The position numbers were made by a program, and so were the translations under genes. A stretch of 64,000 nucleotides of DNA. It comes from Macrostomum lignano (lineage: Eukaryota). This document shows positions 44,410 through 47,400 of the stretch, in pieces (positions within the stretch are counted from its first letter, which is position 1; every line of letters starts with the position of its first letter). The stretch spans positions 1 to 64,000 of the forward strand of contig NIVC01001357.1 in NCBI GenBank assembly GCA_002269645.1, written 5' to 3'. Under the pieces are notes generated by a model, which saw only the letters and a program-made list of their open reading frames with translations, did not search any database and was not told the origin of the DNA.

Positions 44410-47400
44410 ATGCCAGACACAGTCAGGCTGGTTCTACTCGCACTGTTGCTGCTGATATTTGGTGTCTGCGCACCCCTGCAAGCAGGAGCAGCCCTTAGGT
44501 AAACTTCTTGCATATTGCCAGCTCTGCATCTCTTGCACGAATTGTGCAGGCCAGTGTAGCGTTGCCAGCTGTGTTGACTGAATGAAAATCGATATTTAAA
44601 TGCGTGCTTTTTCGTTCTTCTATCAGAAGGCTGTCCTTGTTAAAACATTTCCATAATTGTTGAGTTTCTATGAATTGGAATTTCCGCGGTTTTTCCGCCG
44701 GCGTGTATACTAACGTAGCCATGATTTCTAATCAAAATCGGATGTTGGTTGGTCAAATTATTCATTACTTATTTTAGTTTGGACAGGCAGAACTACACAA
44801 CAGACCAGTCCAACAGTTTCACGGTGGACCAATCTATGAGAGTGTAAGTGATGAGCACTATTATATTTGAGTCTGTCTGTCTGTCTGTCTGTCTGTCTGT
44901 CTGTCTGTCTGTCTGTCTGTCTGTCTGTCTGTCTGTCTGTCTGTCTGTCTGTCTGTCTGTCTGTCTGTCTGTCTGTCTGTCTGTCTGTCTGTCTGTCTGT
45001 CTGTCTGTCTGTCTGTCTGTCTGTCTGTCTGTCTGTCTGTCTGTCTGTCTGTCTGTCTGTCTGTCTGTCTCAGTGTCTGTCTCAGTTTTTGTCTTCGGGT
45101 CAGCCTTGTTGCCTGTCTCAGTGCCCGAGAGTGCAAACTCCAGCTGCAATCACCAACCCCGTAGCGAGAGGCTCAGCAGCAGACTCCTGGCTGGCTACAA
45201 CCGTGACGAAAGTCCTCACAAAGGTAATCCCGAGCATTAGCGCGAGAGCATATTTTCCTCAAGTTTTTAGCTTTCCCATAAATGCATTCGACTCAATTGT
45301 AATTTACTCTCTGGCCGCGCAGTACTACTTACTTCTGAACCCGTATGTTTTATAAATTTTTATTGGAGCTAAAAGCTTACTGAACTAATCATTTATATAA
45401 AAGTTCCTTGCTTTTTCTCGAATTTCCTCTTTAGAAAGAACATTATTGATCGACTGTTACAGAACTATACTCGACAGAACAGCCCCCATGGAGGTAGGTA
45501 AACTTTGTAGAATTTTTTCTAATGAATTTTTCGAAATTGCTCCAACCTTTGTAGATTACAGTTCATTTTTTGTGCTGCTACTTCCTTAAAAATTATTCTA
45601 ACCTTCAATGTACACCGGGCCCCTGACTATCTTTTACGTGATTAACAACTTCTATCCCTCTCAATACTTGTAAATTGACTCTCTATTTAAAACTTCTATC
45701 CCTCAATGTACACCAGGGCAATTGACTCTCTATTTAAAACTTCTATCCCTCAGTGTACGCCAGGGCAATTGACTCTCTATTTAAAACTTCTATCCCTCAA
45801 TGTACACCAGGGCAATTGACTCTCTATTTAAAACTTCTATCCCTCAATGTACACCAGGGCAATTGACTCTCTATTTAAAACTTCTATCCCTCAGTGTACG
45901 CCAGGGCAATTGACTCTCTATTTAAAACTTCTTTCCCTCAGTGTACGCCAGGGCAATTGACTCTATTTAAAACTTCTATCCCTCAGTGTACGCCAGGGCA
46001 ATTGACTCTATTTAAAACTTCTATCCCTCGGTGTACGCCAGGGCAATTGACTCTCTATTTAAAACTTCTATCCCTCAGTGTACGCCAGGGCAATTGACTC
46101 TCTATTAAAAAAATCTATCCCTCAATGTACACCAGGGCAATTGACTCTCTATTTAAAACTTCTATCCCTCAGTGTACGCCAGGGCAATTGACTCTCTATT
46201 TAAAACTTCTATCCCTCAATGTACACCAGGGCAATTGACTCTCTATTTAAAACTTCTATCCCTCAATGTACACCAGGGCAATTGACTCTCTATTTAAAAC
46301 TTCTATCCCTCAGTGTACGCCAGGGCAATTGACTCTCTATTTAAAACTTCTTTCCCTCAGTGTACGCCAGGGCAATTGACTCTATTTAAAACTTCTATCC
46401 CTCAGTGTACGCCAGGGCAATTGACTCTATTTAAAACTTCTATCCCTCGGTGTACGCCAGGGCAATTGACTCTCTATTTAAAACTTCTATCCCTCAATGT
46501 ACAAGTATAAACACTGTAGCCATATTTATTTAAGCCGTAGGTGGAGAAATATTCTTTGAGGAAAGAGAATATATATTAGATTTTGCATTTCAACTCCCAG
46601 CTGCTTTAAACAAATTCAGCCTCTTGGCACTTGTTTGCCAAGGCCAGACAGGCACCGCGACTGTGTCAGTGCGAGAGTCTGAAATGTGGTTTTGGCCTTT
46701 TTCTAGGCAAGCAAAGCAACCGCCTTCTCTCCGTCGCCACAGGCTTGTAACTTCTCCTGTTACTCCTGTGAGGGTTTCTATGTAAATCAGATTCACCCAG
46801 CTATTCCTCCGTTTCATCTTCTGTTTTTCCTCTTCTTTCATTGCCCTCTACAAACAGCACTTTTGCCTTCACCCCTGTCATCTTCTGCTTTTTACACTAG
46901 CCTCTGAAACATTATACAACTTTCAGCTCTGTCTATTGTTTCTTCAATACGAGTAACTAACCACTCGTATGCTAACCCTACTGATATACGTAGTTTGCTT
47001 TCGAGTCCTATTCAGAACAGAGGGCTGCTAAATGCAACAAAAGCCAGTAGAGGGAAGCGAGGAGAGGGAAGAGAGGAGAGGGAAGAGAGGAGAGGGAGGA
47101 GAGGGAGGTGAGGGAGGAGAGGGAGGAGAGGGAGGAGAGGGAGGAGAGGGAGGAGAGGGAGGAGAGGGAGGAGAGGGAGGAGAAGGAGGTGAGGGAGAAG
47201 AGGGAGGAGAGGGAGGAGAGGGAGGAGAGAAGAGGGAGGAGAAGGAGGTGAGGGAGAAGAGGGAGGAGAGGGAGGAGAGGGATTAGAGGGATTAGAGGGA
47301 GGAGAGGGAGGGTTGAAGAGGGAGGAGAAGGAGGTGAGAGAGAAGAGGGAGGAGAAGGAGGTGAGGGAGAAGAGGGAGAAGAGGGAGGAGGAGGTGAGGG

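Follow-up and report, generated by a model that had tools for sequence, protein, structure and literature searches.

A candidate pair of mutually exclusive alpha-1-helix exons in a glycine-receptor-like anion channel gene of the flatworm Macrostomum lignano

Introduction

Clusters of mutually exclusive exons are a main route by which invertebrates obtain diverse inhibitory receptors from a small number of genes; in insects, such exons alter drug and insecticide sensitivity. Whether the same device operates on the N-terminal helix of a receptor subunit is the question raised by a locus of Macrostomum lignano, a transgenic flatworm amenable to RNA interference. In the stretch of DNA analyzed here, 64,000 nucleotides (nt) in length (contig NIVC01001357.1 of assembly GCA_002269645.1, positions 1 to 64,000 of the forward strand; hereafter designated the window), a gene for a predicted Cys-loop receptor subunit contains two 59-nt exons in tandem, designated A and B, which an earlier note on this DNA had proposed to be duplicates coding for alternative N-terminal helices. 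In vertebrate Cys-loop receptors (glycine receptor (GlyR), GABA-A, and nicotinic alpha-7), this helix is linked to assembly and surface delivery, not to ligand binding. We report that A and B probably constitute a mutually exclusive pair in a glycine-receptor-like anion channel gene. The anatomy, homology, frame logic, and coding constraint of the two exons are shown here from the DNA, and the usage of both is what we infer.

Results

Anatomy and reading frame of the exon pair

Exon A (45165-45223, + strand; cgtag/CGAGAG...ACAAAG/gtaatc, with slashes at the exon boundaries) and exon B (45435-45493, + strand; tttag/AAAGAA...ATGGAG/gtaggt) are located in the same gene and on the same strand, between exon 2 and a constitutive 68-nt exon, with no constitutive exon separating them. 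Both correspond to the alpha-1 helix and its linker to the beta-1 strand, encoded in 19 residues that are read from the second base of each exon, and the two are identical in splice phase, each beginning and ending with a single base of a split codon; the final GT of exon 2 gives Val with the first base of either A (C) or B (A). The intron separating A from B (45224-45434, + strand, 211 nt) is AT-rich (35.5% GC), and the flanking introns are both GT-AG. The acceptor of B is preceded by a strong polypyrimidine tract, and its donor is GAG/gtaggt. At a nucleotide identity of 26/59, the two peptides have 8 of the 19 residues in common, in the pattern RLL..Y.R..SPH. The conserved L, L, Y, R, and S-P-H follow the family pattern, and the differences between A and B lie at the other positions and in an NYT N-glycosylation sequon that is present in B and not in A. 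The boundaries and size of the exons, the alignment of their peptides, the B-specific sequon, and the flanks of the pair at 44843 upstream and 47595 downstream (exons 44778-44843 and 47595-47662), all proposed in the earlier note, agree exactly with the sequence.

The coding sequence (CDS) containing either A or B is open over 1341 nt and encodes 446 amino acid residues (aa). When A and B are joined together, a stop appears at codon 108 (47646, in the next exon), and when neither is included, at codon 87 (47912). Thus, since 59 is 2 mod 3, the mRNAs with both exons and with neither are frameshifted, just as had been claimed. These stops are located many exon junctions 5' of the last exon, and both aberrant mRNAs are therefore expected to be targets of nonsense-mediated decay (NMD). 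Two other mechanisms of exclusion were rejected, namely, steric exclusion, for which the intervening intron (211 nt) is too long, and U2/U12 incompatibility, as every splice site is GT-AG and the donors (gtaatc and gtaggt) are of the ordinary type. A search for docking and selector sequences, made at one locus with both exons, yielded only short, AT-rich or low-complexity inverted repeats, the best pair being 19 nt at 79% (45345-45363 with 47440-47458).

Homology and coding constraint of the two exons

An exon of only 19 codons, with a nucleotide identity as low as that between A and B, might resemble its neighbor merely through a chance open frame flanked by a chance AG and a chance GT. This likeness was evaluated with a position-specific scoring matrix (PSSM) derived from 45 distinct alpha-1-helix 16-mers of relatives, no Macrostomum sequence being included. 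Over the 64-kb window in six frames, the scores were 31.7 bits for B, 25.8 bits for A, and 8.6 bits for the best other site; A therefore exceeds every other site by 17 bits. In an ungapped 19-mer scan with BLOSUM62 covering all six frames of about 150 kb of DNA, the A-B score was 42, whereas the best background score was 36, given by one segment of a 273-bp tandem repeat that is present in every copy, and otherwise 31. Moreover, A is equal to B in strand, phase, and length, and is located 211 nt from B in the very intron expected for such an exon. Only two columns of this exon, Y63 and P69, are invariant across 46 family members from flatworm to vertebrate, and A retains both. Over the core 13 residues (RLL...SPH), A scores 42 and B 27 against Owenia (IAGYDKRESPHG), and A scores 45 and B 46 against Tubulanus; by this measure, A is at least as near to the outgroup orthologs as B is. 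Adjacency, equal length and phase, and sequence homology, by which exon duplicates are recognized, are all found in the pair.

The two copies differ at 32 of the 57 coding nt (10 at codon position 1, 7 at position 2, and 15 at position 3), the Nei-Gojobori method giving a synonymous difference (pS) of 1.11 (saturated) and a nonsynonymous one (pN) of 0.41, and all 8 common residues are encoded by different codons. In a neutral simulation of 50,000 runs, in which 32 random substitutions were put into either exon, no run reached the observed score (maximum 38, versus 42), and more than half gained a stop. The similarity between the A and B peptides therefore reflects long purifying selection on both copies. 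Judged by the 19-mer scan, the simulation, and the PSSM, both A and B are genuine alpha-1-helix exons, and a chance likeness is effectively refuted, with a probability close to nil. The frame test, the PSSM, and the simulation also support the proposal of a tandem duplicate pair that codes for alternative N-terminal helices, its exclusivity being enforced by the frame.

The peptide of B is identical in 19 of 19 residues to that of the homologous exon at three M. lignano paralog loci (L001, L002, and L003), the GC content at third codon positions (GC3) is lower in B (0.47) than in the CDS as a whole (0.62), and one public protein model (P0342, described below) skips B. It might be supposed from these facts that A is the exon normally used and that B is an unused copy, held similar to the paralogs by gene conversion and not by selection. 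Conversion copies DNA, however, yet B differs from the exons of L001-L003 at 11-12 of 59 nt, with all variable sites synonymous and seven of them unique to the window copy; among random changes in B, just 21.6% would be synonymous. These exclusively synonymous differences exclude recent gene conversion as the cause of the conservation of B. As B also has stronger splice signals than A, we consider this explanation highly improbable.

Alpha-1 exons in relatives

The ortholog in the brachiopod Lingula anatina, annotated as "glycine receptor subunit alpha-3" (XP_013386520 / XP_013392719; locus L004), is 58% identical to the M. lignano protein and belongs to the closest relatives found outside the phylum. 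Alignment of the isoform clusters revealed that the Lingula RefSeq isoforms X1 and X2 differ in the alpha-1 exon alone (SGFLESLLKRSNYDRGQPPML versus SWFLGKLLRNYDKLRPPMQ). The two exons, at 7555-7613 (59 nt) and 8559-8623 (65 nt), are arranged in tandem; their phase is identical, the length of each is 2 mod 3, and the next exon (9342-9409, 68 nt) is homologous to that at 47595-47662 in the window. The device is therefore not without precedent in Lophotrochozoa: isoforms X1 and X2 of Lingula exchange the homologous exon, and it is thus annotated in a second spiralian phylum. Tandem exclusive exons are well known in Cys-loop receptor genes; for the alpha-1 exon, we found this RefSeq precedent and no published description.

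In Lingula (7310-7490 of LFEI02000170.1), the functional 59-nt copy is immediately preceded on its 5' side by two additional copies of this exon that have decayed but still include the acceptor (tttag/CCCTTGGTTCTTAGGGAGG in one, tttag/CTGCTCTTGGTTCTTAAGG in the other), with a period of about 122 nt. The 3' part is missing from both, and neither is in frame, yet their DNA is still visibly similar; it looks as if the Lingula alpha-1 exon were undergoing ongoing local duplication. The exon pairs within each species (Lingula and M. lignano) are more alike than the exons across species, and the two duplications may therefore be either independent or of shared ancestry. The alpha-1 exon, 59 nt in Lingula, measures 62 nt in Owenia. 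Scans of the Owenia (L006) and Tubulanus (L007) loci and of M. lignano L001-L003 found neither a second alpha-1 exon nor a remnant of one. A candidate in Owenia (YLLHNQFKDFSPH, 6228-6266) was rejected, being without usable splice sites.

Public gene models and present use of exon A

Several observations weigh against the use of A at present. The paralog loci L001-L003 carry a B-type exon only, with no A-like remnant, and A is thus lineage-specific or was lost from these loci. The acceptor pyrimidine tract of A is poorer than that of B (its donor being AAG/gtaatc). In addition, neither exon A in frame nor the 5' part of the gene was found in any transcript or protein of the searched collections, the sole exception for the 5' part being UniProt A0A1I8JNV9 (P0342), which begins exactly at 45165, joins 45223 to 47595, and skips B. 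This model is out of frame through single-base indels, which also occur in constitutive exons, and uses cryptic sites at 47942 and 49650. It has the appearance of an ab initio model predicted from an assembly rich in indels and lends A little support; what it shows is only that a gene finder accepted the splice sites of A.

These same observations, namely, paralogs with B alone, no A-containing product in databases, and a weaker acceptor tract, would be expected if A were a recently silenced relic of an old duplication, selected through most of its history but now unspliced in a gene that has become B-only like its paralogs; the Lingula locus shows that extra alpha-1 exon copies do decay to pseudo-exons. 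On the other hand, A keeps its exact length, open frame, and AG and GT, the invariant Y and P, a PSSM score of 25.8 bits, and a GC3 (0.63) like that of the CDS. Neutral sequence decays fast here, as the paralog introns are already unalignable, and the decayed Lingula copies lost their frame and 3' end while the DNA was still similar. A relic is thus a serious but unlikely alternative, and we retain as the more probable interpretation that A and B form a pair in current, mutually exclusive use.

The public M. lignano annotation of this gene consists only of fragments (P0008, P0121, and P0342), and the finding of A and B corrects these models. In the fragment P0008, exon 8 (49452-49651, + strand) is lengthened by 39 nt (49652-49690) to a downstream GT, which adds 13 residues in frame before M1; this extension is probably a mis-prediction and not a real alternative donor.

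Structure of the host gene and identity of the receptor

The gene model, built from reading frames and splice sites, consists of 11 exons at 44410-51802 on the + strand, and all its introns are GT-AG. Exon 1 (44410-44498, + strand), ending at the donor CCTTAG/gtaaac, contains the start codon and a signal peptide of 29 residues, read directly as a hydrophobic N-terminus; it is without homolog support, N-termini being variable in the family. Exon 2 (44778-44843, + strand; 66 nt, tttag/TTTGGA...GAGAGT/gtaagt) encodes a variable pre-helix linker; it is presumably used, and its length, a multiple of 3, would keep the frame even if it were skipped. The constitutive 68-nt exon (47595-47662, + strand), encoding the beta-1 strand, has a Lingula homolog that is also 68 nt long. 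Directly 5' of it (47555-47594), 13 in-frame residues faintly resemble the end of the alpha-1 exon and were judged to be a chance product of AT-rich sequence. A scan of the gene for further duplicated exons found none, the 68-nt exon being single in the window. The seven remaining exons of the model, all on the + strand (47874-48019, 48389-48478, 48563-48645, exon 8 as above, 50010-50109, 51207-51442, and the last, 51599-51802), together encode loops D to C, the Cys-loop, M1-M4, and the PAR motif.

The protein matches the Pfam domains Neur_chan_LBD (about 1e-48) and Neur_chan_memb (about 1e-39), carries a Cys-loop of the form C-x13-C, and has the PAR motif of anion-selective channels ahead of M2. 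By these domain, Cys-loop, and PAR features, the product is classified as a Cys-loop (pentameric) ligand-gated anion channel subunit. Its M. lignano paralogs P0001 and P0002 are 72-75% identical to it.

The earlier note had labeled this subunit a GluCl and had stated that lophotrochozoan GluCls evolved separately from the ecdysozoan ones, the latter being borne out by the literature (PMC4338433). Among solved structures, however, the best matches of the protein are the glycine receptors alpha-3, alpha-2, and alpha-1 (E about 1e-111), followed by GABA-A beta subunits, with no GluCl in the top 60, and its identity to the Aplysia and Biomphalaria GluCls (45-49%) is about equal to that to the vertebrate GlyRs. 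Lophotrochozoan GluCls have a common loop-A arginine (FFRNEK), and the verified GluCls are without the loop-B glutamate (PMC4338433). The loop-A arginine is present in the M. lignano protein (VPDVFFRNEKK), but the loop-B glutamate is retained (MLESFGHT, with the same E as in the LESFGYT of GlyR), which departs from the GluCl pattern in loop B, the "initial loop B" being placed by our own reading of the alignment. On these matches and residues, glycine receptors are the nearest to the protein, and the label GluCl is an unproven guess.

Surroundings of the gene in the window

In the channel gene, the majority of the larger introns each contain a long tandem array. An intronic (GTCT)53 microsatellite (44871-45082, detected with Tandem Repeats Finder) ends about 80 nt 5' of A, and further arrays are composed of a 47-nt unit (x18, 45673-46502), a 9-nt GAGGAGAGG unit (x41, 47059-47417), (TCTG)68 (48038-48311), a 22-nt unit (x28, 48721-49344), a 21-nt unit (x25, 50198-50718), and a 20-nt unit (x20, 50762-51156). 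Upstream of the channel gene, a CUX/cut-like homeobox gene (34743-40754, + strand) encodes three CUT domains and a homeodomain, interrupted by long INQS-type microsatellites; the sole M. lignano match to its protein is a UniRef model (P0159) with 82% identity over 45% of the query. Just 5' of the CUX-like gene lies the repeat that gave the top chance score to A (30620-34250), in which the 273-bp unit is present in 14 tandem copies with an open frame in each. Downstream, a large multi-exon gene (53585-64000, + strand) has long open segments, e.g., 59013-60344, with poly-Q and proline-rich runs, and contains repetitive SPQPPQ-type arrays at 56480-57400.

Discussion

A sequence of events consistent with these results can be proposed as follows. 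Tandem duplication of the 59-nt exon for the alpha-1 helix and its linker to beta-1 would have created A and B. In each mRNA, the spliceosome would place one of the two, A or B, between exon 2 (or exon 1) and the 68-nt beta-1 exon. The two resulting 446-aa subunits would differ at 11 of these 19 residues, which lie at the top of the ectodomain, with the sequon in B and not in A. The reading frame would at least enforce exclusivity, with removal of the mRNAs containing both exons or neither by NMD. According to this proposal, A is presumably spliced into mRNA at present, and the two helices would alter assembly, export from the endoplasmic reticulum (ER), or choice of partner, not ligand binding; such an effect of the exchange appears plausible from the sequences. 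Should both forms be expressed, this flatworm would provide a simple example of a receptor whose variable part is the N-terminal helix.

A wider generalization is that the alpha-1 exon is a recurrent or ancestral hot spot of exclusive-exon duplication in spiralian glycine-receptor-like channels, with its helices serving as an assembly code selected by splicing; the duplication is found in one flatworm and one brachiopod, and the brachiopod locus also has fresh copies in decay. We regard this as speculative and rather doubtful. If it were true, the helices would set the partner subunits or the exit from the ER (with predicted glycosylation of B at NYT), and receptor composition would be diversified with the ligand site untouched.

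Among the known systems, the insect GluCl exon 3 (3a/3b/3c) and RDL exon 3 are similar to A and B in being tandem exclusive exons for the N-terminal extracellular domain of an anion-selective Cys-loop subunit. The variants of the insect GluCl exon 3 are located "in the vicinity of loop D", and insect exclusive exons are considered to tune the properties of their receptors (PMC2064938, PMC13512814). Exon 3 of insect GluCl and RDL would be the beta-1 exon, the counterpart of 47595-47662 in the window, the source papers giving neither exon length nor strand name. The insect exon had been taken to be the equivalent of A and B; A and B encode the alpha-1 helix, and the two regions are presumably adjacent, not equivalent. 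The insect exons further differ in belonging to another receptor clade and in that their splicing has been shown experimentally.

The vertebrate GlyR alpha-2 belongs to the closest characterized family. It shares its exon architecture with the window gene, the 68-nt exon included, and it also has a tandem duplicate. Fish alpha-2 "X1" models span both copies of the beta-1 exon (FGSVTETTM ... FGSIAETTM in the family alignment), and the vertebrate GLRA2 3A/3B pair is therefore placed in the 68-nt exon, which corresponds to 47595-47662 in the window, one exon 3' of A and B. Unlike in the window gene, it is the 68-nt beta-1 exon that is duplicated in GlyR alpha-2, with variants only a few residues apart, and the alpha-1 exon is single in vertebrates. 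The fish X1 models themselves (P0090, P0092, P0094, and others; ~500 aa), which read through 3A, 3B, and the intervening intron, are probably annotation artefacts.

The nemertean orthologs (Tubulanus polymorphus and Lineus longissimus) belong to the same ortholog group, with 61-63% identity, and rely heavily on alternative exons of equal length. The gene is very splice-diverse in these species, with 5 RefSeq isoforms in Tubulanus (P0006 cluster) and 10 in Lineus (P0007 cluster). The exons exchanged for others of equal length are those of the Cys-loop and of loop F/C, the latter with three versions in Lineus, and in Tubulanus that of M4 as well; in contrast to the window gene, these are the alternatives, and the alpha-1 exon of Tubulanus is single.

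The Lingula pair, known solely as a pipeline annotation for which we found no descriptive paper, differs from A and B in that its exons are about 950 nt apart and 6 nt different in length. In the other respects compared, it has the same arrangement as A and B, that is, tandem, same-phase alpha-1-helix exons, both 2 mod 3, followed by the homologous 68-nt exon.

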